DNA from: Lepidodermella squamata
Taxonomy: Eukaryota; Animalia; Gastrotricha
Direction: 5' to 3'
Length of the DNA: 64,000 nt
NCBI GenBank assembly: GCA_047495785.1
Contig: JBLDXI010000054.1
Location: 1,054,001 to 1,118,000 of the forward strand
Below are positions 3,235-48,852 of this stretch, piece by piece. The notes under the pieces are model-generated. The model was not told the origin of the DNA. It was given only the letters and a program-made list of their open reading frames with translations, and searched no databases. The position numbers and the translations under genes were made by a program. How positions within the stretch are numbered: the first letter of the stretch is position 1; each line of letters begins with the position of its first letter.

Positions 3235-4253
3235 CTACACAGGATTTGCCGACTGATCGTAGCTATGAAACTCCTCCATTATTGGCTCGGGACACTCTTC
3301 CGGCATTTGCTTCGCGATATAACTCGTTTTATTCGGCTCTTGATACGTAACTCTATCTCCGCTATAGACATTATGAGCAATGTCTCTTCCACACTCGGGG
3401 CATTGATGGATAACTGGAATTGAAAATTTTCAAATTATGATGGTAATTACTGAAAATTGAAACTAACCATCGTTGCACTCTTTTGTTACAAGGGGTATGA
3501 TCCAGCAAAAGAAAGGGCATAAGCAGATTAGGAAAACGAAGAAACTGATCCAGACCCCACATCCTTTGACATAGCGAATGTTGGTGACAATTTGCTTCTT
3601 GCAACAAGGGCAGGTCGTTTCCGTTGGCTCTCGACATTTCTCCAAGGGAAGAGGTTGTTCGGTTATGGTAGGCTCGGAACCTGGGAAGAAATCATGAGTA
3701 AAACTGGCAAGAGCGATAGGACAAGCTTACCTCTAGGTGATAGCAATGATTTATCAACCGCTGGGCTAGCCACTACAGGTTCCTTCCGGTGAATTTGAGG
3801 CAGCATCGCCATTTGATTGAACCGAACAATTGGCCGAATGTTCTTTCTTGCCAGAGCCCAGTTATTTCGCCTCGGAGTCTCATTCGTGAACGGCAGAGGA
3901 GGTTGTAGCATAGCCGCGTTGTTCGAGCCTTGATTCGTAAACAGAGTCGCCGACCTTGGCCTGTAGCAATCCCCAACTGTTGAGATCGGATTCGAAGAAT
4001 AGTAGTCGACCCCGATCGACACCCCATTGACCTTTGATTCTCGTTTGGTCGGAGTAGAATACCCACTGGACCCGCTTCCTGGGCATGGGTTCGCCCCGAA
4101 AAGCACCTGCCTGTTCGAGACAGGGGACGCAGCTCGCGAGTTTCCTGGAGACATAAACTGGTTATACTGAAATTGAACACCAGGTAACGGGAGGTTTCTA
4201 GCATCGTGCCCGATGACAGGCGCTACGAAGCTGTTATCACTTGGTTGCCACAT
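3235..4253 (-). CDS. LITAF-domain protein with long disordered N-terminus (3 exons)
   Basis: Intron 3730-3681 joins the 3663..4253 ORF to CPCC...WISFFVFLICLCPFFCWIIP; a second intron leads to VIHQCPECG; TAG at 3237-3235. Confidence 0.85.
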
Positions 4254-11676: not shown

Positions 11677-14217
11677 TTAGTTCGATAGCCGAACCATAAC
11701 ATTGTCGGCAGCATTTAATGGACGAATTCCAGACGATATTCTATGTCGGAGCCTAATTCGCTCGAAAATCATTCTGATATTATCGAAGAAACAAGCCCCG
11801 GATGTAGAAGCCGAAATGACGAGTGAAGAGAACGCGACAGCAACCGCTTGATCAAATGGATCTTGAATAATCGCAAGGATGAAAATCGAAGCGATCGAAA
11901 TAATGACTGCGTTGGACAGGATTAGTTTAAGCTTCAAAACTTCCAACGTTTCCCTAGCTGCTCTGTGTCGGTTCAGGCGATAAACATTCTGAATAGACTT
12001 AAGCCCCATGAGACCATTTAAAGTGATAAAAACCGCTATCCAGCGAATATCCCATAGAGATTTGCAAATCCAACCATTAAAGTGGGTTAAAGTATCAGTC
12101 GCTTCGTCATAGTCATCCTTCGCACGGAATGGCCAAAAAGAGTGCTGAGACGGATCGCTAGCAATCCATGCCTCTATTATAGCTACATTAAGTAGGATAT
12201 ATATAACGCAAGACTGAGCGACGCTGATTTCACGGACTCGATCGTAGCTATTTGCGAACATAATCGCGCTCGAAGAAGCTTCCGAGTGACGTGCTCCTGA
12301 GTCTAGTCGTGGCCTTAGGGTGGGAGCTTCCCCCGTCAGGTCTGAGTTCGTATTTCTTACAGAAGGGGGAGCATGCAGAGAGTATTTCGAATTGCTCTTT
12401 GAAGCTGCTTTACTTGAGTGATGGAAAATTGAAGATCGAGTTCGAAGTCTCGAAACAGACGTGACCTGTCCGAGGAAAGATACCCCTCCTGCTCTGCCAC
12501 TAGAAGATGAAGACACGGCCCTTAAACATCCGACTAGATCGCTCGATTTTGCGCAAATCATGCCAACGAGGAACGAAAAAGCTGCAGAAAGGCCGGAAAT
12601 ACGGAAAATGCAAAGCCAACTCGAGTTGACGTCGTCTGTCACATAGACAACAGACGTCGCGTTGAAAAGCAGACAGCTAATTACGACAAACGAGTCGAAC
12701 AGACGCATTTCTTGATGTTGTGTGAAAATGAACTTATGTACCACGGTTATTAGCTGAAATGTTGAGATCAACCCAGCGATGGCGTATATGGCGTATCTGA
12801 GGTCTTCAGAAACTTCAAGAGGCTCGTATTTCTCGTTCCAAGCATCGCGGGGGAATTCTTTATCTGGCGAGCCTGTCCACGGAAATTTCACTGGGCCAAT
12901 AAAGTCGTAACTTTTGACATCAGCGAAGCTTGAATTGACCTTCAAGACGACTTTGTAGGTGTATTCGATAGAATTTGCCTGGGATGAGTAGATACCAGCA
13001 AACATGGGCTCGTAGTCCGGCTCGAGACGTTTCGAGTAGAGGGTCCGGCCAACTCTCAAGCTGTTATAATCCTGTTCAGCCGCACTTCGATTCATAGCTT
13101 TCATCACAAGCTGAGAATCTGGATCTCGTAAGGATGAGTTCCTTTTGATTAGAAGCTCCTCGGCATCGTGTAGGGTCAGAATTGTTTGCAACATAGCATC
13201 GTGACAGTAATAACGTGATCTGTAGTCCGGAACTCGAGATTTGTTAGTTTTGGCATCCAGGAGTGCCTCAAATTCAACCATGTCGTAGCCAAGCCTGGTT
13301 TTCCCGTAATTTTCAGTCGGGAAAAGGTACGAACCCATCCAAATCGTAATTTTGTACTGCTCCATCAATATTTCCTTCGTACAGATTGGAGGGATATTAC
13401 TAGCAGTCGGATCCATGAACCCGTTGATATTCCCGACTATTGCGAACTTGGGACCTCTCAGCCCAAAACGGTACGCCTTGCAAAAGAAGACTGAAGCTAA
13501 CGCCGGGGAGTTGAGATCGATGACAATGATTCTTAGGTTCGTTTTCTTCAAATTCATGATCGTATCATCTTCGATTGTTGAAACAGCCTCGTACCATGCG
13601 ATGGTGAAGTCAAGATTTTTACTCAACTCGTAGAAGAAGTTCGAGTTGGCGAGGTCAAACGCGTTATCCGAATTGCTGATCATCGCGAAACGTTTCCAGC
13701 TGGTGAAGTGTTTGATAATCGCAGCTCGAAGTGTCACGATGTTGAGGCCAGGGATTCGCGACCGATAGACGTTTGGATATTGGGCTCGTTTGTCGATGAG
13801 ATTCGGAGCTCCGCAGCCAAGTGCGACAAAGACCATACCAAGCCGATGGTATAGCGGCCCACTACGCTGGCAGCCCGGGCTGAAGTAGGATCCAACAGTT
13901 ATCGGAGCTTTGAAGGTATTAGGCCCTAACGTAGCTTGGTCCGCCAGTGAAAACTCCATGACTCCTTTCGGAATAAGGGAAGAACCAGCTCCTTCATCGA
14001 GGTAAACAGTTTCGATTGAATATTCGGGCAGAATATCGTTACGGCTGTTCGCGACATCAACAGCTACCTGCATTGATGCCTTGCAAATCGAACCATCAAA
14101 TGGGTTATTCCCAGTGAAAGGAACAAATGCGATGAGCTTCAATTTGTACGGCTTTTCCGCAGCTGAATTGCTTATCGCGATCGCCAGCAATTCAAGAAGT
14201 AGAACTTTCGAAAACAT
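11677..14217 (-). CDS. GABA-B-like class C GPCR, subfamily I (intronless, 846 aa)
   Basis: Signal peptide; Venus-flytrap motifs (AMQVAVDVAN..ILPEY, YPNVYRS, WKRFAMI, NLRIIVI); no Cys-rich domain; seven hydrophobic helices with TM3 Cys (WLCIFR) and ECL2 Cys (GWICKS). Confidence 0.85.
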   Translation of the reverse strand: MFSKVLLLELLAIAISNSAAEKPYKLKLIAFVPFTGNNPFDGSICKASMQVAVDVANSRNDILPEYSIETVYLDEGAGSSLIPKGVMEFSLADQATLGPNTFKAPITVGSYFSPGCQRSGPLYHRLGMVFVALGCGAPNLIDKRAQYPNVYRSRIPGLNIVTLRAAIIKHFTSWKRFAMISNSDNAFDLANSNFFYELSKNLDFTIAWYEAVSTIEDDTIMNLKKTNLRIIVIDLNSPALASVFFCKAYRFGLRGPKFAIVGNINGFMDPTASNIPPICTKEILMEQYKITIWMGSYLFPTENYGKTRLGYDMVEFEALLDAKTNKSRVPDYRSRYYCHDAMLQTILTLHDAEELLIKRNSSLRDPDSQLVMKAMNRSAAEQDYNSLRVGRTLYSKRLEPDYEPMFAGIYSSQANSIEYTYKVVLKVNSSFADVKSYDFIGPVKFPWTGSPDKEFPRDAWNEKYEPLEVSEDLRYAIYAIAGLISTFQLITVVHKFIFTQHQEMRLFDSFVVISCLLFNATSVVYVTDDVNSSWLCIFRISGLSAAFSFLVGMICAKSSDLVGCLRAVSSSSSGRAGGVSFLGQVTSVSRLRTRSSIFHHSSKAASKSNSKYSLHAPPSVRNTNSDLTGEAPTLRPRLDSGARHSEASSSAIMFANSYDRVREISVAQSCVIYILLNVAIIEAWIASDPSQHSFWPFRAKDDYDEATDTLTHFNGWICKSLWDIRWIAVFITLNGLMGLKSIQNVYRLNRHRAARETLEVLKLKLILSNAVIISIASIFILAIIQDPFDQAVAVAFSSLVISASTSGACFFDNIRMIFERIRLRHRISSGIRPLNAADNVMVRLSN

Positions 14218-26169: not shown

Positions 26170-27162
26170 ATGGCTCAGGGGGTGTTGAGGCACCCTGAAA
26201 TAGGCAACATAGTCACAAGCAATTCATTCCTAGGATCGATCCTCGTCAAATTCTGCAGCAAAGACGAGTTGGTAACAATTCACGGCGAAGCACTAGAGCC
26301 AACTGAACTCGATAATTTATACGAATATTTCCGGCGATTCTGTATGTTTTACTCAGGGACCACTTCTGTATCAGCTGCTGCTCCGTGTTTCTTCAACCCG
26401 TGTTATTTGCACGAGGACGGGTCCGTCGAAGCAGTCGCTATACCCCGCCATCTCAACACGACCTTCATTTGCCTATTCGGGGCGATCAAAGCTGATATAG
26501 ACTCAAACCCGTCCATTCTCGGGCAATGGAAAACTGTAACGAGAAAATTAGCCAATGAGATCAAAGGTAAGACTATTTGTAGACGACTTGATTTTCAGTC
26601 GGCTGATCAACATCTGTTTTTTTCAGTTTTCATCAACGAATTTCCTGGCCTGCGCGATCCCCACGCTCTAATGAGTGAAGCTGCAGAAGAGGTCTTCAGC
26701 AAACTGGACGATGCTAAGGATACAGGCGGCCCCCTGAAAATTGAAGGCATCATCTGTAATGGAGTTGATCTCTCCAGCAAGAAACTAGCCCTGATGATCG
26801 CTTATTACGGCATTCTAATCGGCGAACAGTGGCCTTTTCTCGTACCATCCGAGAGAAAATTTCGTCTCAAAAAGACTTCAGCAACAGATGACGAAAACCA
26901 GGAAGAATACGAACGGGCCAGGGCTATGTCAGTCGGCACAGCTGAGGCTCAGAGTTTGACGCAACGGCGTAAAATGAAGCGGCAAGCATCTAGTGACGAG
27001 AAGTCACGTAGTGCCGAGAAGAAAGTAGCGAACCCCGAGTCAACGGGCGATTTCGTATGGCGAAACGCTCACTTCTTCATTGGATTTGTTGTCCTGGCCG
27101 TGTTTGGCATTGGGCTGTATGGGGTTCTCTACTTCATAATGATGCTGAGCACTCACGATTGA
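26170..27162 (+). CDS. Unknown protein with a single C-terminal TM helix (tail-anchored); possible upstream exon
   Basis: 330-aa ORF: globular-looking N-terminal part, charged linker, hydrophobic HFFIGFVVLAVFGIGLYGVLYFIMML near the C-terminus. Confidence 0.65.
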   Translation: MAQGVLRHPEIGNIVTSNSFLGSILVKFCSKDELVTIHGEALEPTELDNLYEYFRRFCMFYSGTTSVSAAAPCFFNPCYLHEDGSVEAVAIPRHLNTTFICLFGAIKADIDSNPSILGQWKTVTRKLANEIKGKTICRRLDFQSADQHLFFSVFINEFPGLRDPHALMSEAAEEVFSKLDDAKDTGGPLKIEGIICNGVDLSSKKLALMIAYYGILIGEQWPFLVPSERKFRLKKTSATDDENQEEYERARAMSVGTAEAQSLTQRRKMKRQASSDEKSRSAEKKVANPESTGDFVWRNAHFFIGFVVLAVFGIGLYGVLYFIMMLSTHD

Positions 27163-28479: not shown

Positions 28480-29080
28480 GAATTTCGGTGCTTCTTACGA
28501 ATTTACATAACTCAATCCTCGAAGCATTTTTCTTTGATGGTATTTGCCAAGATTAGAGTACTTTCAATCAACGACTGACTGCTGTGCAGAAGAAAACGCT
28601 GCTAACAACATTCGATAGAACCGTTGAAGCATTAAAATCGTTGAATATTGCATGGTATATGAAGGCGAATCTTTACTTGGCTTTACTTGGCTTGGCTTAT
28701 ATCGACACAGCGCCATCATTCCGTGAGTCATCGGGAAAACTCTAAAATCTGCTTTATTGAACCCTGCGATCCTATAGTTGGGACAACGACATTGACATGG
28801 CAATCCCCATAGATGAGGAAAATTACAAGCCTAACAGTACTTCTCTTTTGATTCAAATTTAGGCTCTGGAACTGTGAAAGTTGGGATATACCCAAGACTG
28901 GACCTTCTAAAAGTCTTCCTAACCTCACAGAAAGCAACAAAACTTTTACCATCGAGGGGTAAAAGCCAGGAAGACGAAACGAATGGACTGAATGTTCCTT
29001 ATATTGACGTAATTCTCTATCGCGGCAAGTACTGGTTCCCGAATGATCAGCTGGATCGCATCGTAAAATATGCCTTCTTT
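28480..29080 (+). pseudogene. Degenerate LicD-family paralogue (boundaries approximate)
   Basis: Remnants WY..ESLLG, YRHSAIIP|WDNDIDMAIP, LLKVFLTS.K.TKLLP and PYIDVILY, with microduplications (CTTTACTTGG x2), frameshifts and no recognisable last exon. Confidence 0.75.
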
Positions 29081-29269
29081 AAACTCATAAAACTATCTTC
29101 CAAGCCGGGATTTTTTGATATTTTCTTAACAGGCAGGCATTTTGTATATTTTTATATCAAAAAATGCCCGCTTGCCCAGAAAATATCACCAATAACCCGA
29201 CTTGTCAAACACACAATGGAAACCCAAAGAAAGTTTGAGCAACACTCCAAAACGGTGTTATTATCCCAA

Positions 29270-29340
29270 TCTGTGGTATTTTTTTGGGTTTTTCCATCTT
29301 GGCCTTGCGAACTAGGGGGTACGATACCCTCCATTCTCCC
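29270..29340 (-). repeat. Inverted copy of the core of the 9579-9994 element
   Basis: Reverse complement GAATGGAGGGTATCGTACCCCCTAGTTCGCAAGGCCAAG matches GAATGAGGGGTATCATACCCCCAAGTTCGGCAGGCCAAAG at ~9795. Confidence 0.65.
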
Positions 29341-29691
29341 TGTACTTCTAAAATGTTATGCAATGTAGCCGGAACAAATCTACCGATCTTTCTTCATCCT
29401 TCGAGTTCAGCATCCATTATGCAGATCAATATTCAGTTGTTTATATTCGGTGAACTCGCTGAGCTCAGGCAATATTCTTTTTAATGAGCATCGGGTTTTT
29501 CATTGCTGGAAAATGTTGTCAAGTGAACAGCTCAGACGGCGACACGCCATTCATATTTATAAAAAAGCAGTGATGAATAGGCTGTAAGGACTTGACTGAT
29601 TACGGAATCGGCCCACGGTAATTTCCATTCAGTAGAAAATTCTAAAATTGTCTTAGAGACATTCGTAACCAGTGCAATAACGATTTTTACG

Positions 29692-30587
29692 ATGCGTTCT
29701 GGTTTCTCAATCTTCATTTTAGCGTGTTTCCTGCCGTTTCTGTAAGCGATCCTTTGTCCCTAACTTAATGGGTTTCCTTAAGTTCTCCTTTTCTTTATAC
29801 AGATCAACCTTCGACATTGCTGCCGATGCTTTCAAGCGAGTTCTAAACCCTGCGAGAAAGCGAACCTTGATCGAAACTGCTAAAATAACAACTGAAGGCC
29901 TTGATTACATCAATGCTACTTGGTTCCTCGACTCGGGATCTCTGCTTGGATACTATCGCCATGGCTCGATCATACCGTGGGATGATGACATCGACTTCGG
30001 AATATTTGCCAATGACACCAGCGTCTTCACAACTTCTCTTCAATATTTAGGTGACAAGCTACAAGTTTTCTTTGATGAAAAGCATGGCAGAGGGGTGGTT
30101 GAGGTTCGAGTCTATGAGGCAATCGATTTAATCAAGGTTTTCTTCACTTCACCGAAAAAGACGCTTCTGCTCCCAGATTGGTACGACACGGTGCGGGAAC
30201 GAATTAGATGGCCAAGCGTTGACGTTTTTCTGTTTCGACCTTTCGACGATAATTCGACTATTTCGATGAAATGGGGAGAAGACGGTGCGGTTGTAAGTTA
30301 TATCATGAATGTTTAACATAAAGTTACAGCTATTCGCTTTTCCACAGCTAGCTCTGTCTAACGTATTCCCACTGAAGAAGGCCATTTTCGAGACAATACC
30401 TGTTTTCATACCTTCGAAAGTGGAAACCTATCTGGAGAAAGTTTACGGGAATCTGTCTTACTGCGTGAGTGCAGTCAATTTTCATCGACAGCATGCGATT
30501 CAGCAAAAAATGTGGATGACAGACTGCAGCGACCTTGCTAAAATGTACCCGAAATTGTACAAGGCGAAAGCTGCTGCAAAAACCTAA
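29692..30587 (+). CDS. LicD/fukutin-family nucleotidyltransferase-like protein; exons 29692-29741, 29803-30292, 30330-30587
   Basis: MRSGFSIFILACFLPFL signal; WFLDSGSLLGYYRHGSIIPWDDDIDFG; WPSVDVF; VFPLKKAIFE...YLEKVYG. Confidence 0.87.
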
Positions 30588-31078
30588 TATAATCTCATTC
30601 TATTATATCCCCTTTCTAGTATGGAGTGTGATAAAAAAATAAAACATTTTGCCGCTAAATAAATGTTGGGAAAATTAAATACCGATATTTGTTCGTTGGT
30701 TTAAAAAATGCGAGTGCATTGATCTTGACATTGATGGCATCGCAGAGTTAAGTGAGACAGCTGTTTCAACCAAGTAGGCGTTGTCGCGAAGTGATAAGCG
30801 GTACGCATCCATGATTAAACGGAACCTGGTTATCAGATAGATCTGTGGGTGTATCTGCGGGATGACTCATAAATTTAAGTAATAATTTTAAATATGTAAA
30901 AGCCAATTAAAGAGACTACGGTTTAGGAGGTAGGAAGTTTAAAAATGGTACTACAGCAGCGGGGCAGTTTCATTAAGCCATTCCAAAACCGCTGGAAATT
31001 GTTTATTGTCTATTAAAGAAAGGTAATCGTGCGCTTTAAGCGAAGTTATAAGAACCACTTCCAACACTCTTTTCATAG

Positions 31079-32188
31079 CTAAAATCTCGTATTGTTGACG
31101 TTCGGCCTGGAAGCTGTTGAGTTGGGGTTCAGCGGCGTAGTATAATTACCAAAATATGCAACCATCGGCTGAGTTGAAGGCGGCTGTTGTTTCGCAGTCG
31201 TAGTAGTAGGTTTCGGAGTTGGAACAGTCTCAGAACCAGACGAACTCGGAAGTTTCACTTTAGCCGAGTTTTTGTCAGCCATGAGCGCTGACTGGTCAAC
31301 AAACTCCAAATTCGACGACGGAACTGTGCAGAACCAATGCAGATCGATATCGTCCCACTGAGGATGCGGCTCCCCGGTCAAAAACCACTTCATACCATGG
31401 TCGGCCAAGATAGCTCCATACTTCTGAAGTGCCTTCAGAATTACCTGGTTATTCCTTGAAAACGAACTGATATTGTAATCGGATTTGAGACGCATTCTTA
31501 TGCCCATTGGGGGTAAAGCTGGGTCGGTGTTGAAGTACTCGAGATGGCGGGCTGGCCAGACATAAGCCCTCTGAACCTTAGGCAAAGTGAAACGGATCGC
31601 ATGCTTTATCTCCCCAGCTTGAACTTCGTCGTAGCGAATGAGACCCGGAAACATCGGAAGACCAGCTCCGTCAGCGGATAGCCACCCCTCGGGGCGTAAA
31701 TCGTTCGACTTGAGGTTGAAAATAGCTCCAGACGCTGCCTTAATCGAGCCATCAGGTTGCTTTTTGTAGTCGAGAAGTTCGTACAGAGTGCAGGTTGATT
31801 TATCAACTACAATAACGTGACGATCTTCGGCACTGACTTCGTAAGGCACGTTGTCCGGGATTGGGTAGGGCTTACGGTCGCTCTCGTCCCAGTAAACGAA
31901 GGTAATGTTCTTTTTTGGCTGTTTTTCGTCGACTACGACGTAAGGAATGCCGCACGGGATGTTTTCTGTGAATTTTCCTGTTCCTAAGTAACGACGGATT
32001 GTGTCGCGGCCTTCCATTTTAGCGATTGAATCCATGTAGACTTTGTTGAGAGGGTGAACAGGCAATTTGTCGACCGGAGTGTTCCAAACATTGTCAGCTG
32101 GGAAAACTGGGCAGCCCGCGATCGTCGGCTGAGCTACTGATATATGCACAATTTGAAATAGCGTTAGTGCAGTTATGAAGTACATCAT
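31079..32188 (-). CDS. Secreted intronless protein resembling an uncharacterised bacterial family (HGT candidate)
   Basis: 369-aa ORF with signal peptide; motifs CPVFPADNVWN, GIPYVVV, DESD..PYPIP, DRHVIVVD, LRPEGWLSADGAGLP.FPGLIRYDEV, YVWPARH, PPMG.R.RLK, ALQKYG.I.AD; Thr/Pro-rich tail. Confidence 0.85.
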   Translation of the reverse strand: MMYFITALTLFQIVHISVAQPTIAGCPVFPADNVWNTPVDKLPVHPLNKVYMDSIAKMEGRDTIRRYLGTGKFTENIPCGIPYVVVDEKQPKKNITFVYWDESDRKPYPIPDNVPYEVSAEDRHVIVVDKSTCTLYELLDYKKQPDGSIKAASGAIFNLKSNDLRPEGWLSADGAGLPMFPGLIRYDEVQAGEIKHAIRFTLPKVQRAYVWPARHLEYFNTDPALPPMGIRMRLKSDYNISSFSRNNQVILKALQKYGAILADHGMKWFLTGEPHPQWDDIDLHWFCTVPSSNLEFVDQSALMADKNSAKVKLPSSSGSETVPTPKPTTTTAKQQPPSTQPMVAYFGNYTTPLNPNSTASRPNVNNTRF

Positions 32189-32737
32189 ATGTATATTAGC
32201 AGAAAAATTTGCTTAATGACACAGTCGTGACTTGTCCAAGTGAGAAAGAGAAAAGGAAAACATCAGCCAGCTTTATTGATTCCCTTACTAGGCTAGACAT
32301 GTTTATTTAGCTGCTTAAGTGAAACAATTTCAATTAGGAATACATTTTTTATTCAATTTCAAGTGAAAAATTAAGACGGTGATACTAATAGTACCATTTT
32401 TCGAGGAAAATTTCAGCAGCACTCCGGTTTGATCTTGAGCATGATTGAATCATACTATAATCTATATCAAACCAGTAAATGCGAATCTGAAGCGGTCAAC
32501 AAGAGTTTTCAAATCGGCGATTAAATCTTGCCATCTTAGATGCACTAAAGACTAAAGATAGACCATCACCATCAACATGGCTATCTATATCAATTTACGA
32601 AGGTTCACCGAACCTGGGAAAATAGATCGAGGAAGCGCAGGAAAGTGCATGCTGAAATGTACGTTATCTGCGGAGTTTTCCTGAATTACCAGAGATTTTG
32701 CGACTCGAAAAGCGTTAACAGCAGTAAAGTTTTTCGC

Positions 32738-32788
32738 TGTTTTTCTGAGTCATGGCACGGACGGATATTTTTCACAGAAATGCACACT
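32738..32788 (+). promoter_or_regulatory. 51-bp block identical upstream of two subfamily-II GPCRs (second copy 37065-37115), containing TGAGTCA
   Basis: Exact 51-bp identity about 360-430 bp upstream of both ATGs within more diverged sequence; includes an AP-1-type TGAGTCA. Confidence 0.5.
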
Positions 32789-33145
32789 AGTTCGCAGGAA
32801 ACGGAGTTGAAATGGGTATGCATTAGTCCTGCGAAAGAAGTGGGCGAAGGTTCAATTTTCAATCATCCAGGAAATTCAAGTCCTGGACTGACTCTTCATT
32901 GCTCTGAGAATATTAAGTCGAATAGAACAACCGTGAAGGGAAAGTTTCCTATTACACGCCATTCGTGAACAATTAAATTTATTTGTTCGTTGTTGCGTGG
33001 TTTAGGAGAAGATATCGGAAAGAAAACCCCGATAATGGCAGGAAATTCCTTGATAGCATGCCGTCATGATTTGCAGTGTAGAAATCTAATCCGAAAACAA
33101 TACATATATAAAGGCGAAAAAGAAATAAAAAATTAACGCAATCCG

Positions 33146-35761
33146 ATGTTTCGAGTATTTATCTCTCTGATAGCAGCTAGTGCTGCACTAGCCAAAATAC
33201 CAATGTCAGCGCCACTGGAGCCAAGAATTTTCTCATCAACATACAATCCGAACGATACGAGTCGAAAAGTCATCAGCATAATGGCGTCATTCAATTATGG
33301 TGGCACTGTTCAACCTATGGGGCCCATTTGTACGGAGGGGATAAAACTTGTCCTTAATGGCGTGAAAAGAATGAACATGCTACCAGGCTATGAACTAGCT
33401 GTTGACTTTGTTGACGACCAGGTAGGCACGCTGACAATATAAAACTTTTTTCTATTGTTCGCTTCAGTTTTCCAGACCGATTGGAATCAGTAGAATGGTG
33501 ACCCAACTTCAGGTTAATGATTCAGTCTCAGATCGACTACCACTCACGGTGGGTCCATTCAGTTCTGCGAACATAAACACTGGTCAAATCTTTCAACACT
33601 TCAACTACATCGGAATTACGTTGGGGTCAACACAGAACGAGCCTGTCACCCAGCGATCGCGTTATAGCAACTTTTTCGTCACTCAAGGCCGACTTGGTAT
33701 ATGTTTCAGCAGCCTTCACAAGTTCCTTGACATGATGAGGTGGCAAAGATTGGCAATATTATCAGAGGGTAGCGACTACTTTGGGCAGATAGATGCCGAA
33801 TTCGTCCAGAATTTTGAGATGAACAATGGCTCGAAAGTTTTGGGAGTTTTCAAAATTCCCTACATTGTCGGATCTTTAGCTGAGGCTGAAAATATCGAAC
33901 AAGCAGTTTCAGACTTGAAAAAGCTGAATCCGAGGATCATCATTCTGAACGCAGCAGCAACAGCTCGAGCGGCTTGTTATCTACATCGATACAAGTTATT
34001 TGGACCGAATGTGGTCATCTTCACTCTGTTGAGCTCTGTTTTCGTGGCGAATGACCCTTCACGCTTTGATTGGTGTTCGGAGAGCATGTTGGAGGAGGTA
34101 CTTCAGAGTGTTATCTCTTTCGGTTGTTCTAACTTCATGAATTTGGGCATTGAAAATGACGTGGATTCCCTCGGAAACTCTGGGTCTGACCTAACAAATT
34201 GGATAACGTCCAGAATAGAAAGGCCTGAAGCTTCAACGATCTTCACTAATAGGCGACATTCGTGCTATGACGTCACCATGACGGGAGTTTTTGTGTTGAA
34301 CAGAACCGAGACTCTTCTTAACAGCAGTAAGTATGAACAAAATTTACCTCTGAATACCTTTGACACGTTTTCTTTCAGAGAATCAGACTCTCTCACAATG
34401 GGTAACTCGCGGGGATATGTTCAAAGAAAACGGAAGCTCGATTGTTGAAACCATGAAAGAAGCGCTATTCTCTGCCCGCTATAGAGTGAAAGCCGGGGAT
34501 ATCGCTTTTGAAAAGAGTACAACTTTGAACACGGGTGGCAATTCGATACAAGGCGTCATTCAATATAGAAGAGATCCCACGACAAACAAAGTCAAACAAA
34601 TCCCAATATGCGTCTACTACTCAAAGACTCAAGTTTTGAATTGCAGCCTCTCGCCAATAGTTTGGAGAACATCGAACGGGAAACCTCCTTCAGATACTAT
34701 TCACATAGAGAAAATAATTTCTCCGCTACTCGACCCTCCCGCCTACATAACAATCACGTTCTTCGCGGTGTTGTTACTCGCGACCAGTGTTTCCGTTTTC
34801 ATTTGGCATGAAAAAATGCGTCAGAAGAATGAAAGAATTTCAACATCCGCCCCCGAGCTTGGACGATTTATCATGCTTGGAAATATCCTACTTTTGACTT
34901 CCGTCCTGCTTCAACCCATGCTGTTTGATTCGAATTTCCAACCTCTGATGACTCTTGCAAATGGCGTGTTGTTTCTCGGCATAACCTGTTTAATGTTTGG
35001 CTTGGAAGGGAAGCTGGAACTGGCATATCTTGCCCTGAAGAATTACGCAACTATGAATCTGACAAATGATGATCGAGTGTCACGGAGAACAACATTCTCG
35101 TCAGTTAAGGCAGCAAAAAGGATTCCAGGATTCGGGCAATTAAAAATCGCTGTATGCTGTGTTGGAGCTCTTGCAATGACATTGTTTGCAATAATGCTGT
35201 TGGTGTGCTTCGTGGTATCGCCGCCTACTGTCGTAACGACAATAGATGAAGGCTTTGTCAATGATGCGGTAGAAATCGCGTTCGTGAACTATAGCCTAGC
35301 AATGAGAACCTCAGTTATGTCTCAATTTATCATTTCTGCGACCTGCTTGATCAATGGGGTTATCACTTTGAGAGGAAGCTTCCTTGCACATGCCCTCAGA
35401 ACAGTAAGTTTAAGTTTTCCTTGTTGAATATGAAATCTCTAAATCCTAACGATCATTGCAGAAAACGATTTCAAAGATAACCGATTTGAAAGCCACTTCA
35501 GCTTGCTTCTACGCGACGGTGATGCTGCTAGCTTGCGGAGGCATCATTGCGGGTGCAATTTTCGATGAAAGTTCCTATCAACGCATCACGTTGTCAGTTA
35601 TGATATTCGCGTGCATCACAATGAATCTGGGCATGCTTTTCTTTCCCAAAATGAGAAAAGCGAAACTTAGCGAAACATCATCGTCTAGCGCAGTAACAAC
35701 CTGGAACCAAGGCCATCGACAGATGAATGCTACATCTGCGATTATGTTCACCTCTACCTAA
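33146..35761 (+). CDS. GABA-B-like class C GPCR, subfamily II copy 1; exons 33146-33421, 33468-34326, 34379-35403, 35462-35761
   Basis: Three short GT-AG introns join four ORFs in frame. Venus-flytrap motifs (MLPGYELAVDFVDDQ, YSNFF, WQRLAIL, NPRIIIL), WRTSNGKPPSD linker, 7 TMs ending LFFPKM. Confidence 0.85.
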
Positions 35762-36601: not shown

Positions 36602-36609
36602 TATGTTGA

Positions 36610-36900
36610 AATCAACGACCAAATATCGGTATTTAATTTTCCCAACATTTATTTAGCGGCAAAATGTTTTATTTTTTTATCACACTCCATACTAGAAAGG
36701 GGATATAATAGAATGAGATTATATTAGGTTTTTGCAGCAGCTTTCGCCCTGTACAACTTTGGGTACATTTTAGCAAGGTCGCTGCAGTCTGTCATCCACA
36801 TTTTTTGCTGAATCGCATGCTGTCGATGAAAATTGACTGCACTCACGCAGTAAGACAAATTCCCGTAAACTTTCTCCAGATAGGTTTCCACTTTCGAAGG
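36610..36900 (-). pseudogene. Inverted duplicate of the LicD gene 3' end plus 3' UTR (source ~30411-30700)
   Basis: Near-identical reverse complement; encodes PSKVETYLEKVYG...KAAAKT* as at 30411-30587. Confidence 0.9.
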
Positions 36901-37494
36901 TCTATGCAGTCTATGTTCAACTTGAAAAAGAGAGCGAAGAACCGCTAGGGATTGTACCAGTTTAATCGGCCAAAAGTGCATGCTGTGCGTGTCTGTGAAG
37001 TGTTCCAGAATTTCCAAAGATTTCGCTGACCAGAAATGTTTAACAGCAGTGAAATTTTAATGATTGTTTTTCTGAGTCATGGCACGGACGGATATTTTTC
37101 ACAGAAATGCACACTTTGAATGCAGGAAATGAAGTTGAAAGGGTATGTATTTGTCCTGTGAAAGAATAGGCGAAGCTTCTAAATGGTTCAATGTTTACAC
37201 CATCCAGGAAATGTCTATCGTTAACCAGTTCGAAATTGACCGGCAGCTTTGTGTTCACTTTGCAAATTTCTAGTCGAAACGCGAACATCCGTCCTGTTCC
37301 CAGGTTAACAGCTCTCAATCCACGCCATTTGCGAACAATTGCATAAATTGTTCGATGTACGTGACGTCAGTTAAGATATCGGAGATAGAACCCCTGAAAA
37401 TAACAGGAAATTCCACGACAGGATGTTGCAGCATAGGATTTCTTTCTTATTGCGATATAAAAAAGCGAAAATGAATAAAAATTAACGCATCCCA

Positions 37495-40114
37495 ATGTTT
37501 AGAGTATTTATCTCTCTGATAGCAGCTAGTGCTGCGCTAGCTAAAATACCAATGTCAGCGCCACTGGAGCCGAGAATTTTCTCATCAACATACAACCCGA
37601 TCGATACGAGTCGGAAAGTGATTAGTATAATGGCATCCTATAACTATGGGGGCACCGTGCAACCCCTTGGACCTATTTGCACTGAAGCGATCAAACTTGT
37701 TCTTGACAGTGCAAAAAGAATGAACATGTTACCTGGCTATGAACTGGCTGTTGACTTTGTTGATGACCAGGTAATCTTTCTGATACTTTAAAAATTACTT
37801 CAATCTCGGTATTAGTTTTCCAGACCAATCGGAATCAGTAGAATGGTGTCCCAGCTTCAGTTTAATGATTCTGTCTCAGATCGACTACCACTAACAGTTG
37901 GCCCTTTCAGTTCGGCGAGCATTAACACTGGTCAAATCTTTCAACACTTCAATTTCGTCGGAATCACTCTGGCTTCAACGCAGAATGAGCCTGTCACCCA
38001 GAGATCGCGTTATCGCAACTTTTTTGTAACTCAGGGTCAACTTGGTATTTGTTACAACAGCCTCAACAGGTTCCTCGACGCGATGAAATGGAAACGAGTG
38101 GCGATATTGTCTGAAGGCAGCGACTACTTCGGACAGATAGAAACGGAATTCATTTCAAATTTTGAGAAGAATAACGGCTCTAAGGTTACGGGAGTTTTTA
38201 AAATTCCAATAATTTCCGGCTCTTTAGCTGAGGCTGAAAATATCGAACAAGCAGTTTCGGACATGAAAAAGCTGAATCCGAGGATCATCATTTTGAACGC
38301 AGCAGCAACAACTCGAGTAGCTTGCTATTTACATCGATATAAGCTTTTCGGCCCAAATGTGGTCATTATCGCCCTGATAAACTCTGTCTTCGCGACAAAT
38401 GACCCTTCCCGTTTCACTGATTGGTGTACGGAGAGCATGCTGGAGGAGGTACTTCAGAGTGTGATTGCCTTCGGTTGCACTAGTCTGATGAATTTGGGTA
38501 TCGACAAGGATAAGGATTCCTTAGGAAATTCTGGGTCAGATCTAACAAATTGGATAACGTCAAGGGTAGAAAAGCCCGAGGCTTCACCAGTCTTCAACTC
38601 GAGGAGACATTCTTGCTATGACGTCACCATGACGGGATTGTTCGTTTTGAATAGAACTGAGACTCTCCTGAACCGCAGTAAGTATATAGTAGCGAAACTT
38701 AGCCCTGAATATTATAGTTCTTTTTCTATCAGAAAATCAAACTCTCTCACAATGGGTGACGAGTGGAGAGTTGTTTCAACGAAATGGAAACTCAATTGCT
38801 GAGACCATGAAGGAAGCACTGTTCTCGACCCGCTTGAGAGCAAACGTAGGCGATGTCGCTTTCGAAAGTAACACAACGTTGAACACGGGCGGCAGTGGGA
38901 TTCAAGGCATCATTCAATATAGAAGAGATCCCATTACAGATAAATTCAAACAATTCCCAATATGCGTCTACTTTACAAAGACTCAAGTTTTGAACTGCAG
39001 TCTATCGCCCCTGATTTGGAGAACCGCGAACGGGAAACCACCCTTAGACACTGTGCATGTTGTGAGAACAATTTCTCCGCTTCTCGATCTTCCCGTCTAC
39101 ATAACGATCACGTTCTTCGCGGTGTTGTTACTCGTGACTAGTGTTTCCGTTTTCATTTGGCATGAAACAATGCGCAAGAAGAATGAAAGAATATCAAAAT
39201 CCGCACCCGAATTAGGACGATTCGTTCTGGTTGGAAACATCCTACTCCTTATTTCTATCCTACTTCAACCCATGCTCTTCGATTTGAATTTCCAGTCTCT
39301 GATGACCCTCGCGAATGGAGCGATGTTTCTCGGCATAACCTGTCTGTTGTTTGGCCTGGAAGGGAAGCTAGAACTTGCGTACCTTGCCCTGAAAAAGGCT
39401 GCTCTAAGTCTGACAACAGAGGATGTAATTTCGCCGAGAACAATCTTTTCATCGGTAAGAGCAGCAAAAAAAATCCGCGGGTTTGGAAAATTAAAATTGG
39501 TTGTATGCTGCGTTGGAGCACTTGGATTAACATTGTTTACAATACTGGTATTAGTGATTTTCGCTGTATGGCCACCTCCGGTGGTGGCTACAACTGATGA
39601 AAACTTCATCGATGGCTCCCTTGAGTGGGTATTCGTAAACTATAGCCTAGCAATGGGATCCTCAGTAGTATCTCAATTCATCATTTCTGCGACTTGCTTG
39701 ATCAACGGGGTCATCATTTTGCGAGGAAGCTTCCTTGCGCATGCCCTCAGATCGGTAAGCTTCGCTTTTCTGTTCAAATCTATCAATCCTAAAAAATTGA
39801 ATTTATTATTGCAGAAAACGAATTCAAAAATAACCGATTTGAAAGCAACATCAGCGTGCTTCTATGGAACAGCGATGCTGATAGCTTGCGGAGGTATCAT
39901 TGCTGGTGCAATTTTCGATGAAAGTTCCTATCAACGCATCACGTTGTCAGTTATGATATTCGCGTGCATCACAATGAATCTGGGCATGATTTTCCTCCCC
40001 AAAATGAGGAAACCGCAATTGGGAGAGACACCATTGTCTAACTCGGTAGCATCATTGAACCAAGGCCATCGACGCATGTTTGCTACATCCACGGTTGTGT
40101 CAAGTTCTTCATAA
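37495..40114 (+). CDS. GABA-B-like class C GPCR, subfamily II copy 2 (4 exons)
   Basis: Paralogue of 33146-35761 with the same three intron positions. Confidence 0.85.
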
Positions 40115-41687: not shown

Positions 41688-44006
41688 ATGCTAGCTATTT
41701 TAGCTTTTACCTGCCTGTTTCCCCACATGATGGCGGCAGAATCGGCCAAATTGCAGCTGCTTACCTTTGTTCCCTTCACTGGAAATGCGCCATTCGACGG
41801 GTCCATCTGCAAAGCAGCTATGCAAGTGGCAGTCGATGCCGCAAATTCTGACTTGGCTATTCTACCAGGCTTCCGCATCGAGCCCCTTTATCTAGACGAG
41901 GGCCTGTTGTCCCTGAACATTCCTAGAGTCACAGTACAGTTCTGGCGAGAGCCGATGCGGGATAACAATACATTCAAGGCCCCACTGGCTTTGGGAGCAC
42001 AATTCAGCCCAGGCTGTCAAAGGGGTGGTCCGATATTCCACCATCTTGGAATGGTTTTTGACGCTGTCGGTTGCCAAGGTAGTGACTTAATCGATCGGCG
42101 AGATCGCTACCCAAACGTTTATCGACAACGCGTTCCAGCTCAAAATTATATCGTCGCAAGGGTCGCTGCGATCAAGCGTTTCACGCCCTGGGTCAAGTTT
42201 GCTTCGATAACGTACGCAGACAATAATTTCGACGTCAGTAACGGTAGATTGTTCCTTGATACGGCTAGGTCAGCTGGATTCGACATCATCTGGTTCGATA
42301 CTGTGACTTCATTAACCGATGAAATGGTCGAATCTTTGAAGGAAAGCAACGCACGAATTATCGTTATTGATATCAGCGGGGCTGCAATGCTGACGGAATT
42401 CTTCTGTAAGATCCATAAATTTGGAATCAGAGGCCGGAGATATGTTTTCGTCTCTTTAATCAACGGAATTCTGGACATGAAACTTCCAACATGGACGATC
42501 GGCTTACCCCCGGGCTGCTCGAAAGAGATGCTACTTGACCAATACAGAAATTCAATGTGGTTTGGGAGTGTTCTCAGCCCTGATATGAATTACGGGCGAA
42601 CAGCCTTGGGCTATGATTTGACGGAATTCGAATCTCGGTTAGATCTTCTGACAAACAAGTCCCGAGTTCCCGATTATCGGTCAAGGTTCTACTGCCATGA
42701 TACTATGCTGGAATCAATTACGATCCTAGATAGGGCTGAGAAGCTTTTGAACCTCGAAAACATGTCTCTCAGCCATTTCGACGGTAGGCCAAGTTACGTA
42801 ATGGATGCCGTCAACAAAAGCGCAGCTACCGTCGATTATGTAACTCTGAGGACAGGTCGCAGTTTTATGTCCAAAAGAGTAGAGCCGGACAACGAGGCTC
42901 TTTTCATGGGTTACATGCCTTTGAATTCAATAGAATTGACAGGGCTATACAAAGTACGACCGTCTGTTGAGTATTCCTTCGAAAACTTCTCGGCTTATGT
43001 TTTTGACGGACCGAAGGTTTTCTCATGGCCCAACAATGGCCTGGCAAAAGACTCTTGGACTGAGGTTACGGTTGAAGTCACAGTCGGACAATCATACCGC
43101 TACGCTGTTTTTGGAACAACTGCTGTTGTAGCCGCGGCCAAGTCTTCGTTCGCTATAGGCTTCTTGAGAAAAAAGATGGAAAGCTTCATCTGGAGAATAG
43201 CCGGATTCTCGTCTTGTTTGTTCCTGGATACATCAGCTTTGATTTTTGTTCTCAGCTCCTCCGACACCGAACTCATAAATCTCTGCATTTTCAGGGTTAC
43301 AATGCTGGTTTTTGGACTAGCTACTATACACGGTTTGGTTATCGGGAAAAGTCTGTCCTTTTCAGCCATTTCTCAGGGCTCTAGAAGGAATACAACCAGA
43401 TCTGCTCTTCGCGTTAGCGGAAATGATGCAATGAATTTAAAAAGAACAAATCTGTCGACCGGAAGTGCATCATCAGGGCGCAGAAGTATGTCAAGGCCTG
43501 AAAAAAAGATTGGAAAAAGCTCGGTGTCGATCACTGCAGTATTTGTCCTGGCTAATTTGCTCGTGGTGTCCGCGTGGGTTGGCTCAAATCCAGCCGCGTT
43601 CAACTTCTCAAACGTTGCAATTTCTTCAACTTATGATGAAGTAAGCGATTTGAAGAGCCACAATTTCGGGTGGATCTGCACGGCTCATTATCAAATCGCA
43701 TGGATTCTGTCGATATGGGCACTGAACATAGCTGGATTACTCCTAACTGGCTTTAGGCTATTGGCAACTCATCGAAGTGCAGGTAAACAAGATGCGGGAA
43801 AGCTCAAGCTTTATGCTGTTTTGATCAACTGCTTGGTCACCCAGTTCGCTTCGATTCTTATCATCGTCCTTCTGAATGATTACTTCAAGCAAATGGCTTT
43901 CATTTCTTTTACGGCCCTCTTCATCTCAACTTCGACTTTTTTCATCGAAAACAGCGGTGAGCTAAAGCAGGCTTTCACCAGGTGTAGAGTTCATTTGCGC
44001 ATTTGA
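41688..44006 (+). CDS. GABA-B-like class C GPCR, subfamily I (intronless, 772 aa)
   Basis: Homologous to 11677-14217 (FVPFTGN.PFDGSICKA.MQVAVD; NKSRVPDYRSR.YCHD); 7 TMs. Confidence 0.87.
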   Translation: MLAILAFTCLFPHMMAAESAKLQLLTFVPFTGNAPFDGSICKAAMQVAVDAANSDLAILPGFRIEPLYLDEGLLSLNIPRVTVQFWREPMRDNNTFKAPLALGAQFSPGCQRGGPIFHHLGMVFDAVGCQGSDLIDRRDRYPNVYRQRVPAQNYIVARVAAIKRFTPWVKFASITYADNNFDVSNGRLFLDTARSAGFDIIWFDTVTSLTDEMVESLKESNARIIVIDISGAAMLTEFFCKIHKFGIRGRRYVFVSLINGILDMKLPTWTIGLPPGCSKEMLLDQYRNSMWFGSVLSPDMNYGRTALGYDLTEFESRLDLLTNKSRVPDYRSRFYCHDTMLESITILDRAEKLLNLENMSLSHFDGRPSYVMDAVNKSAATVDYVTLRTGRSFMSKRVEPDNEALFMGYMPLNSIELTGLYKVRPSVEYSFENFSAYVFDGPKVFSWPNNGLAKDSWTEVTVEVTVGQSYRYAVFGTTAVVAAAKSSFAIGFLRKKMESFIWRIAGFSSCLFLDTSALIFVLSSSDTELINLCIFRVTMLVFGLATIHGLVIGKSLSFSAISQGSRRNTTRSALRVSGNDAMNLKRTNLSTGSASSGRRSMSRPEKKIGKSSVSITAVFVLANLLVVSAWVGSNPAAFNFSNVAISSTYDEVSDLKSHNFGWICTAHYQIAWILSIWALNIAGLLLTGFRLLATHRSAGKQDAGKLKLYAVLINCLVTQFASILIIVLLNDYFKQMAFISFTALFISTSTFFIENSGELKQAFTRCRVHLRI

Positions 44007-46231: not shown

Positions 46232-48852
46232 ATGTTTCAAGTATTTTTCGCTTTTTGTTGTGTTAGCGCTGTGCTAGCCAAAATACCAATGTCAGCTCCA
46301 TTGGAGCCAAGAATTTTCTCAACAACATACAATCCGAACGATTCGAGTCGAAAAGTCATCAGTATAATGGCTTCCTATAACTACGGCGGTACCGTTCAAC
46401 CTATGGGGCCCATTTGTACCGAGGGGATCAGATTAGTCCTCGACAGCATGAAAAGAATGAACATGTTACCTGGCTACGAACTGGCTGTTGACTTGGTTGA
46501 TGACCAGGTAGGCGTGTTGACAATTCAAAAGGTGTTCCCAATTTTTCTCATTGGTCCCATTAGTTTTCCAGACCAATAGGAGTTAGTAAAATTGTGTCTC
46601 AGCTTCAGTTTAATGATTCTGTCTCTGATCGACTGCCGCTGACAGTTGGCCCGTTCAATTCGGCAAATATCAACACTGGGCAAATCTTCAAACACTTCAA
46701 TTACATCGGAATTACGTTGGGGTCAACGCAGAACGAACCTGTCACCGAGCGATCGCGTTATAGCAACTTTTTTGTCACTCAAAGTCGACTTGCCATTTGC
46801 TTTGACAGCCTCTACAAGTTCCTCGACGTGATGAAATGGCAACGAGTAGCTTTATTATCTGAAGGCAGTGACTACTTTGGACAGATAGACACCGAGTTAG
46901 TCCGGAATTTTGAGATGAAAAATGGCTCAAAAGTGCTAGGGGTTTTTAAAATTCCCTACGTTGTCGGTTCTTTAGCTGAGGCTGAAAATATCGAACAAGC
47001 AGTTTCAGACTTGAAAAATTTGAATCCAAGAATAATAATTCTAAATGCAGCAGCCACAACTCGAGCGGCATGTTATCTACATCGATACAAGTTATTTGGA
47101 CCGAATGTGGTCATCTTCACTCTGTTGAGTTCTGTTTTCGTGGCGAATGACCCTTCACGCTTCAATTGGTGTTCGGAGAGCATGCTGGAGGAAGTTCTGC
47201 AGAGTGTGATTGCCTTCGGTTGTTCTAACTTGATGAATTTGGGCATTGACGACGATGTAGATTCCTTTGGAAACACTGGGTCCGATCTAACAAATTGGAT
47301 AACGTCCAGAATAGAAAGGCCTGAAGCTTCACCTATCTTCAATGTTAGGAGACATTCTTGCTACGACATCACCATGACGGGAGTCTTTGTTTTGAATAGA
47401 ACCGAGACCCTTCTTAACATCAGTAATTTTTAACACAATATAGCACTGAAAACCTATACCAGTCTCTTTTACTTGTAGAAAACCAGACCCTTTCTCAATG
47501 GGTGACTCGTGGTGATTTGTTCAAACAAAATGGAATCTCGATTGCTGACACAATGAAGGAAGCGCTCTTCTCGACCCGCTTGAGATTGAAAGCTGGGGAT
47601 GTGGCTTTTGAAAAGAACACAACGTTGAATACCGGTGGCGATTTGATACATGGCATCGTTCAGTATAGAAGAGATCCCTTGACAAACAAGCTCAAACAAG
47701 TTCCAGTATGCGTTTACTACTCAAAGATTCAAGTCATGAATTGCAGTCTCTCGTCTATGGTTTGGAAAACGTCGAACGGAAAACCCCCTTCTGATACTGT
47801 GCACATAGAGACAATAATTGATCCGCTTCTCGACCTCCCCGCCTACGTAACAATCACGTTTTTCGCGGTGTTGTTACTCGCGACTTGCGTGTCCGTTTTC
47901 ATATGGTATGAGAAAATGCGCAAGAGGAATAAAAGAATCGCAACATCTGTCCCTCAGCTCGGACGATTCATCATGGTTGGAAATAAATTACTCCTGATTT
48001 CTATCCTGCTTCAACCCATGCTCTTCGATTCGAATTTCCAGTCTCTGATGACCCTCGCGAATGGAGCGATGTTTCTAGGCATAACCTGTCTAATGTTTGG
48101 CCTGGAAGGAAAGCTGGAACTTGCGTATCTTGCCCTGAAAAGAGCTGCTCTGAATGTAACGATTGATGCTCTAGTTTCGCGGAGAACAATTTTTTCGTCA
48201 GTTAGGGCTGCTAAAAGGCTCCAAGGGTTTGCGAAAATGAAGTTTGCTGTATGCTGTGTTGGAGCACTTGCTTTGGCATTGTTTGCAATATTGTTGTTGG
48301 TGTGCTTCGTGGTATCGCCACCGCCTGTTGTGGCTATAACTGGTGAAAGCTTCATCGATAGTTCCGTTGAATTTGTACCCGTAAAATACAGCTTAGCTAT
48401 GGAATCATCAGCCATGTCTCAAGTTATCGTTGCCGCGACTTGCTTGATCAACGGGATCATCATTTTAAGAGGAAGCTTTCTTGCACATGCTCTAAGATCG
48501 GTACGTTGTTTTGTTCCTATTCTCACAATTTTTGTAATGTTTCTTATTTCAGAAAACGATTTCAATGATAACCGATTTGAAAGCTACAGCAGCTTGCTTC
48601 TACGCGACGGTGATGATGCTAGCTTGCGGAGGCATAATTGCTGGTGCGATTTTTCATGAAAGTTCCTATCAACGCATCACATTGTCAGTTATGATATTCG
48701 CCTGTATTGCAATTAATTTCGGCATGCTTTTCTTCCCGAAAATGAGAAAGCCGGAGTTGGTGGGGACACCAATGTCTAGCGGAGCACCTAGCTTGAAACA
48801 AGACCATCGAAGGATAGATAATACATCTGCGATCATGGTCAGCTCTTCGTAA
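46232..48852 (+). CDS. GABA-B-like class C GPCR, subfamily II copy 3 (4 exons)
   Basis: Paralogue of copies 1 and 2 with the same intron positions. Confidence 0.85.

Follow-up and report, generated by a model that had tools for sequence, protein, structure and literature searches.

The window analysed here, 64,000 nucleotides (nt) of the gastrotrich Lepidodermella squamata (GenBank assembly GCA_047495785.1, contig JBLDXI010000054.1, positions 1,054,001 to 1,118,000 of the forward strand), contains on its minus strand an intronless gene for a predicted secreted protein of 369 amino acids (aa), which is called the candidate in the following. It is very probable that this gene stems from a large bacterial family and was transferred horizontally into the animal germ line. 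The explanation as a whole, comprising the transfer, the retention as a working gene and a proposed function, is one that we consider reasonably probable. Beyond mere similarity, the transfer is backed by linkage, by expression, by amelioration and by the conservation of residues. Given in positions of the window, the gene and its parts are as follows:

31079..32188, minus strand: candidate gene of bacterial ancestry, intronless open reading frame (ORF) of 369 aa (from sequence and homologues)
32129..32188, minus strand: predicted signal peptide, residues 1-20 (MMYFITALTLFQIVHISVAQ) (from hydropathy and alignment to the start of the mature bacterial domain)
31253..32128, minus strand: conserved catalytic-type domain, residues 21-312 (from alignment, AlphaFold2 model and structural comparison with the Atlas)
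31082..31252, minus strand: mucin-like linker tail of 57 residues, rich in Ser/Thr/Pro (from sequence composition)
31002..31007, minus strand: AATAAA poly(A) signal, 72 nt past the stop codon (from sequence; RNA depth fades from 31066 to 30870)
32231..32263, minus strand: pyrimidine tract followed by AG, 43 nt upstream of the ATG (from reading of the sequence)

The ORF is uninterrupted over its 369 codons, starts with ATG ATG and ends with TAG (31079-31081). The signal peptide was called from hydropathy and alignment, without a dedicated predictor; residues 3-19 have a mean Kyte-Doolittle hydropathy of 1.68 and the predicted cut is preceded by S-V-A. The mature protein begins with a Cys-Pro-x-Phe-Pro-Ala-Asp-Asn motif, which is also the start of the mature bacterial homologues, and the domain carries the motifs CPVFPADNVWN, ESD, DRH, LYE, WLSADGAGL, HAIRFT, WPARH, PPMGIRMRLK and LADHG. 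Ser, Thr and Pro make up 49% of the 57 C-terminal residues, which include three N-x-S/T sequons, and inspection of the sequence revealed no hydrophobic C-terminal end and thus no glycosylphosphatidylinositol or transmembrane anchor. An earlier, sequence-only reading of this DNA had described a single-exon ORF of 369 aa with a signal peptide and a Thr/Pro tail, and on re-reading the sequence this description was found to be correct.

A word-based protein search yielded, among the matches listed, at least 6,800 relatives (protein clusters at 90% identity, E≤0.001), and the best protein matches among those listed are 47-54% identical and all labelled 'hypothetical'. Candidate and family align with E-values of 1e-90 to 1e-99 and identities of 45-54% over 78-94% of the query. 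Named matches were, again among those listed, Bryobacteraceae, Chloroflexi and Anaerolineae metagenome-assembled genomes (MAGs), and most of the metagenomic matches carried no taxon label. The two top scorers (P0001, P0002) are bacterial proteins of about 620 aa that contain the domain twice in tandem. A relative is encoded by at least 597 GTDB species-representative loci from more than 12 phyla. The best 80 of these at least 597 loci are 45-53% identical to the candidate (tblastn 1e-83 to 1e-96) and belong to Acidobacteriota, Chloroflexota, Actinomycetota, Pseudomonadota, NC10, Binatia, Desulfobacterota, Verrucomicrobiota, Planctomycetota, Gemmatimonadota, Deinococcota, Spirochaetota and one archaeal MAG. 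Those Atlas clusters that come nearest have a bacterial share of 98-100% and no Pfam family, and the matches closest in low GC or full coverage (P0053, P0079) sit on dense bacterial contigs. A metagenome scan with candidate-specific peptides found only high-GC bacterial DNA with at most 53% identity. The candidate protein itself was absent from the protein database searched, no eukaryotic member occurred among the nearest matches, and an Atlas search for named clusters yielded nothing usable. The idea of the earlier reading that the motif series belongs to a widespread family of uncharacterised bacterial secreted proteins, and not to an animal family, is in agreement with these results, as the family comprises at least 6,800 clusters and more than 12 phyla with no counterpart in Pfam, NCBIfam or the PDB, all assignable relatives are prokaryotic or from phages, and the motifs listed at that time match conserved columns of the family alignment.

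Two maximum-likelihood trees were calculated, one with 81 and one with 55 rows. The terminal branch of the candidate measures 1.02 and 0.89 substitutions per site in these trees, compared to medians of 0.25 and 0.31, and in both of them the candidate belongs to no supported clade and has its nearest rows in three different phyla. Within the bacterial family, members of different phyla are intermingled; the candidate lies inside the bacterial radiation and, in the 55-row tree, groups apart from the phage versions. As the candidate sits on a long, unplaced branch, the trees do not allow a donor to be named. Either the transfer is old or the evolution that followed it was fast. Taken together, protein search and phylogeny returned prokaryotic relatives throughout and placed the candidate within bacterial diversity.

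For an assessment of integration and transcription, contigs of three sequencing runs were compared with window positions 28900-34800. Run X1 is a DNA run and possibly the assembly's own sample; run X2 is independent and originates from another study, nine years earlier. X1 covers every bin of the compared interval, and error-free contigs of this run lead from the 3′ spacer into the ORF (30662-31417) and from the ORF start into the 5′ spacer (32081-32553). With values of about 100-190, the X1 depth in the ORF is the same as in the flanks. A second X1 contig on 32081-32553, which differs in 41 letters and 23 gap positions and has about half the depth, is the second haplotype, ORF start included; the haplotype differences at 32081-32553 fall in 473 nt upstream of the candidate. 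Variant contigs of LicD exons, LicD being the neighbouring gene, are about 6% apart in the X2 RNA. As the X1 haplotype contigs and the LicD RNA variants differ strongly, allelic divergence in this host is very high.

That X2 is an RNA run is proven by GT..AG joints which remove 61 and 55 nt from LicD, the contigs showing the introns at 29742-29802 and 30293-30347, respectively, to be spliced out. The X2 depth is zero in both spacers (30673-30869 and 32249-33036) and 4.5-12 over 31067-31854, which corresponds to the 3′ two-thirds of the minus-strand candidate. This level is comparable to that of the neighbouring G protein-coupled receptor (GPCR) gene (3-29), whereas LicD shows higher values (21-116). 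The 3′-biased coverage, which ends just past the stop codon, fits together with the AATAAA signal to a polyadenylated minus-strand mRNA. Judged from the sequence, the upstream pyrimidine tract with its AG could possibly be a (trans-)splice acceptor; this segment has no X2 RNA coverage. X2 joints inside the ORF that were labelled 'opposite strands' were taken as artefacts of low-depth contigs, because the GPCR gene shows such joints as well, likewise spaced by about 100 nt. As no bacterial protein closer than 54% was found in the collections searched, the X1 and X2 contigs are not those of a contaminant. The candidate gene is an integral part of the animal genome. The sequence-only reading had argued against a chimeric join, and with X1 contigs bridging both ORF ends at host depth and in two haplotypes this can be upheld. 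It had further named RNA evidence as a check and misassembly or contamination as what would speak against the gene: X2 provided transcript contigs over 31067-31854 with empty spacers, and the read evidence went the other way, X1 providing the linkage and X2 containing the gene alongside spliced LicD.

The composition of the gene has moved toward that of the animal. The L. squamata assembly (2024) has a GC content of 43%, is based on multiple displacement amplification (MDA) and was decontaminated with BlobTools, in a study which also sequenced C. elegans (PMC11660948). The window has a GC content of 0.428. For the candidate ORF, the GC content is 0.485 and the GC content at third codon positions (GC3) 0.53; eight host coding stretches have a GC3 of 0.44-0.51, and the means for 80 bacterial homologues are 0.65 (GC) and 0.80 (GC3). 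The codon usage of the candidate correlates with that of the bacterial homologues at 0.14. The candidate is thus largely, but not completely, ameliorated toward host composition.

Residue conservation was analysed by comparing the candidate with 75 bacterial members, with alignment columns binned by their conservation. The candidate keeps the consensus residue in 82% of the columns with a conservation of at least 98% among the bacterial members, in 76% of those conserved to 90-98%, in 59% of those conserved to 75-90%, in 47% of those conserved to 50-75% and in 22% of those conserved to less than 50%. Such a gradient would be expected from continued purifying selection. When eight phage homologues were added, a deep core could be defined that comprises 35 positions conserved among bacterial and phage members alike, of which the candidate retains 33 (the differing ones being T170L and A174G). 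All 13 charged residues of this core are kept, namely E102, D104, E117, D122, H124, E137, R165, D173, H196, R199, H215, R233 and D263, which suggests a presumed active site that is intact within changed surroundings. The alignment accordingly contains the conserved Asp/His/Glu/Trp residues noticed in the earlier reading, as part of a retained Asp/His/Glu/Arg/Trp set. Its description of the protein as domesticated by the animal stands as far as the intact ORF, the low-level transcription and the conservation gradient reach, and no further.

The AlphaFold2 model of the candidate, built with 76 sequences, is confident, with a predicted local distance difference test score (pLDDT) of 89.4 and a predicted template modelling (TM) score of 0.88. 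It superimposes on eight bacterial Atlas clusters with TM scores of 0.86-0.93 and root-mean-square deviations of 1.5-2.3 Å. A Foldseek search of the model against the PDB yielded no match (best E 0.3), and two structure searches with VIA-align gave no convincing match either. The modelling and Foldseek comparison proposed with the earlier reading thus resulted in a confident model with the fold of the bacterial family and in no PDB match, and the predicted fold appears to be new to the PDB. The weak PDB rows recur on double-psi beta-barrel proteins (six MltA chains, five expansins, cerato-platanin, kiwellin, barwin, YuiC and PA4485), and in these weak rows the six MltA chains align with the candidate over 171-184 residues. 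An assignment as MltA, a GH102 lytic transglycosylase, was rejected, as hhalign gave a probability of 0.15% against E. coli MltA and no MltA or 3D Pfam match was obtained. MltA, 3D and other Pfam families of double-psi barrels had no match in the 76 family members at E≤10. Because of these negative profile and Pfam comparisons the likeness to double-psi beta-barrels is taken as a resemblance only.

Clues to the function come from phages, which offer the strongest one, and from domain partners. Five predicted phage proteins share the fold of the candidate (E 3e-16 to 1e-11, TM 0.58-0.69). One entry, BFVD A0A411B1R7, is an annotated minor tail protein of Gordonia phage Guillaume (Foldseek E 4e-15, TM 0.69), and another fold-sharing phage protein is annotated with parallel beta-helix repeats. 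In addition, relatives with 32-45% identity are found on eight IMG/VR contigs, for the most part within proteins of 750-1,480 aa; among these, loci L082-L088 are 32-38% identical to the candidate. On L083 (1933-10729), a tape measure gene (PHROG E 3e-46) is followed by genes for a 771-aa protein, in which a ConA-like lectin module precedes the candidate-type domain, and for a 1,335-aa protein with Glyco_hydro_cc, phosphoesterase and BACON_2 modules. Comparison with PHROGs identified the tape measure protein alone and gave no match for the domain. From its gene order, the L083 module is a candidate for a multi-enzyme tail tip that breaches the envelope. Bacterial members are fused to CBM96, type I dockerin, CE2_N, BACON_2, SLH, SH3_3, type IX secretion system (T9SS) sorting domains and Ig-like spacers. 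CBM96 is a family of alginate-binding modules (PMC9971899).

The presence of the domain in phage tail proteins and its fusions with carbohydrate-binding modules suggest a secreted enzyme that acts on glycans. We see about even chances that the candidate would be such a glycan-cleaving secreted enzyme, acting on a polysaccharide of the bacterial envelope or of a matrix. A possible action on glycans had already been considered in the sequence-only reading; this part has gained indirect support from the fusions and the phage tail proteins, whereas that the protein is an enzyme we still infer. According to the proposed mechanism, a gene of a bacterial secreted or cell-surface family would have entered the germ line and been retained as a working gene, whose eukaryotic outfit would consist of a eukaryote-style signal peptide, a poly(A) signal, the mucin-like tail and a mostly host-like composition. 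The mature domain of 290 residues would be an enzyme with an active site formed from E102/D104, E117, D122-x-H124, E137, R165, D173, H196, R199, H215, R233 and D263, and would bind and cleave a polysaccharide of the bacterial envelope or extracellular matrix. Bacteria would secrete this enzyme or anchor it to their surface, and phages would mount it in tail-tip proteins. The animal protein would be secreted, O-glycosylated on its tail, and would digest bacterial or biofilm food or defend against bacteria. More tentatively, and with a probability that we rate clearly lower, the animal may have recruited a member of an uncharacterised enzyme class, whose fold would be without precedent in the PDB, and may use it as a depolymerase that is secreted for digestion or against bacteria.

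The surroundings of the candidate in the window are those of an animal genome, as is evident from the LicD and GPCR genes as well as from Cys-loop channel exons and ankyrin genes. The features next to the candidate are:

29803..30587, plus strand: last two exons of the LicD gene, convergent with the candidate (from GT..AG joints in run X2 and Pfam LicD)
33146..35761, plus strand: class C GPCR-like gene (ANF_receptor and transmembrane region), divergent from the candidate (from Pfam ANF_receptor/7tm_3)
30410..30705: left arm of an inverted repeat, 296 nt, comprising last LicD exon and 3′ untranslated region (UTR) (from sequence self-comparison)
36606..36901: right arm of the same repeat, 98% identical to the left arm; the LicD 3′ end stands here as an orphan copy in inverted orientation (from sequence self-comparison)

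The LicD neighbour (Pfam LicD, E 9e-12) belongs to three tandem paralogues near 27.5, 28.7 and 29.8 kb. Within the region of these paralogues, positions 29097-29490 show an X1 depth of about 1,260-3,520, compared to about 100 in the flanks, and many variant contigs, and are a high-copy repeat or transposon fragment. The GPCR-like gene is one of seven paralogues within the window; members of this class C cluster (ANF_receptor plus seven-transmembrane region) were located at 11677-14217, 33146-35761, 37843-40114, 41688-44006, 46594-48659 and 57414-59804. As a 772-aa member had no relative at E≤1e-10 in a database of 5.8 billion proteins, the cluster appears to be a strongly lineage-specific receptor expansion. 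That the candidate is flanked by spliced LicD and GPCR genes, as read earlier, was confirmed by the Pfam matches and, for LicD, by the introns seen in RNA.

The arms of the inverted repeat flank a segment of 5.9 kb that contains the candidate and the first GPCR gene, and the X1 contig of the LicD 3′-end arm shows double depth. The repeat probably marks a recent, local inverted segmental duplication, and it could mediate inversion. An interpretation of the 5.9-kb segment as a mobile element was rejected, since its arms are LicD exon and 3′ UTR and not transposon ends. The duplication of the LicD 3′ end had been placed on the far side of the candidate and used as an argument against a chimeric join. 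The duplication exists but is not adjacent: the copy has the opposite orientation and is separated by 5.9 kb, with the first GPCR gene in between. As an argument it is therefore weaker than stated and no proof by itself, the absence of a chimera being supported by the read evidence instead. Two further ORFs of the window should be mentioned. A 330-aa ORF at 26170-27162 (plus strand), which has no Pfam or Atlas match and a poor codon-usage correlation with host genes (0.12), may be an orphan or another foreign gene. The ORF at 61177-61773 (plus strand) has a strong Glycos_transf_2 match (E 1e-33) and could represent either a normal host gene of the DPM1 type or a further acquisition.

Several observations weigh against the explanation proposed here. 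The X2 RNA consists of low-depth assembled contigs that carry no strand information, and it leaves the 5′ third of the ORF uncovered. The genome was probably assembled from MDA-amplified DNA; chimeric molecules are a known product of MDA, which is why the independent RNA run matters. The codon usage of the candidate correlates weakly with that of host genes (0.23, compared to 0.40-0.71 among host genes). The absence of animal orthologues from the protein database is weak evidence, as this database does not include the host's kin (the GPCR finds nothing). With regard to function, searches of Pfam, NCBIfam and PDB sequences yielded no match for the core domain, whether the query was the protein alone or a profile of 76 sequences, none of the family members is characterised, a literature search for the WPARH motif found no report, and the gene neighbourhood in bacteria is not conserved, the most frequent Pfam family occurring in 3 of 135 flanking ORFs. 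Finally, 14 of the 78 near-invariant columns (at least 98% conserved) are changed in the candidate, among them D67Y, F68L, W149I, T170L and N264H, while the minimum retention among bacterial members is 93%; the activity of the candidate may for this reason be altered or lost.

As to the origin of the gene, bacterial contamination or a chimera formed by assembly or MDA could be suspected from an intronless bacterial-type gene, from a probable source assembly that is MDA-based and from the 296-nt inverted repeat nearby. Yet X1 contigs join both ORF ends to unique host DNA at host depth and in two haplotypes, a run from another study and year contains the gene together with spliced host transcripts, no bacterial protein is closer than 54%, and a GC content of 0.485 contrasts with the bacterial mean of 0.65, so that this explanation is largely refuted and has a very low probability. 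Slightly less improbable is another route than from a bacterium to this lineage, be it an old eukaryotic gene that was lost elsewhere or an arrival via a virus or another eukaryote. It would be in line with a donor that cannot be placed, with phages carrying the domain and with databases lacking the relatives of the host. However, no eukaryotic member is among the nearest matches, the candidate is nearer to cellular bacteria (up to 54% identity) than to the phage versions (32-45%) and groups apart from the latter, it has no introns although its neighbours have them, and its GC3 is still above that of the host. Horizontal transfer from bacteria thus remains the explanation that we prefer.

With the transfer accepted, the copy might nevertheless be non-catalytic and bind glycans in the manner of a lectin or opsonin, it might have changed its substrate, or it might be decaying. 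Loss at near-invariant positions (82% retained, at least 93% in every bacterial member), a 3-column deletion before the DRH motif, the long terminal branch (0.9-1.0, medians 0.25-0.31) and the low RNA depth fit to such an altered copy, which we nonetheless regard as unlikely, since the ORF has come through about one substitution per site without interruption, the conservation gradient is still visible, none of the 13 charged residues common to bacteria and phages has been lost and the model is confident and has the family fold. Equally unlikely, but the main rival with regard to function, is an enzyme with a target other than glycans; bacterial walls could, for example, be attacked by a metal-dependent peptidoglycan peptidase or amidase, or by a phosphoesterase. 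The conserved His/Asp/Glu set (D122-x-H124, H196, H215, D263) resembles metal sites, SH3_3 and SLH tails bind cell walls, and wall peptidases are common in phage tail proteins. On the other hand, no structural or sequence match to peptidase or amidase families was obtained, the recurring partners are the carbohydrate-binding CBM96, Laminin_G_3, BACON, CE2_N and dockerin, and the weak structural matches gather on glycan-active double-psi beta-barrel proteins. A secreted enzyme for glycans is therefore still favoured over these alternatives.

The candidate leads to a family of at least 6,800 clusters, together with phage tail proteins, for which there is neither a Pfam model nor a solved structure nor a known function. 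Its retention by an animal and the use of the domain in phage tail tips suggest an activity on bacterial surfaces. If the more tentative reading, the recruitment of a new enzyme class, is true, this would be the first documented functional gene transfer in Gastrotricha, and the locus would be an entry point to define a new carbohydrate-active enzyme family with thousands of members. No account of gene transfer in gastrotrichs turned up in a literature search, and the L. squamata genome paper contains no gene-transfer analysis (PMC11660948).

Among known systems, the closest one is the unnamed bacterial secreted family itself (e.g., P0003-P0120 and GTDB loci L001-L080), which has the same domain from end to end (E down to 1e-99, TM 0.86-0.93) and the same motif series, starting at the Cys-Pro motif right after the signal peptide. 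Unlike the members of this family, the candidate resides in an animal genome, has a host-like GC content, a long branch and 14 near-invariant changes, and possesses a mucin-like tail where bacterial members have Ig-like, CBM, SLH or T9SS tails instead. Phage tail proteins have the same fold and share the 35 deeply conserved positions with bacterial members; in phages, however, the domain is a module of a tail protein of 750-1,480 aa, encoded beside a tape measure gene and fused with a lectin-like module, whereas the candidate is a free secreted domain. Of the solved structures, MltA (GH102) has a barrel interrupted by an inserted domain, as the candidate model may have, the structural likeness being weak. 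Expansins, GH45, cerato-platanin, RlpA and YuiC are glycan-active double-psi barrels as well, and this is the sole recurrent theme among solved structures. Small invertebrates have acquired microbial wall-degrading genes, as exemplified by the foreign genes of bdelloid rotifers and by the GH45 and expansin-like genes of plant-parasitic nematodes. The candidate differs from these cases in belonging to another, uncharacterised family, in its gastrotrich host and in having gained no intron. It resembles them in that it would be a secreted enzyme of microbial descent that sits between host genes, is ameliorated and expressed, and plausibly has food or microbes as its target. The horizontal acquisition of the candidate is well supported and represents a kind of event, transfer from bacteria to small invertebrates, that is established in rotifers and nematodes, while the family from which the gene comes is one undescribed in function and structure.

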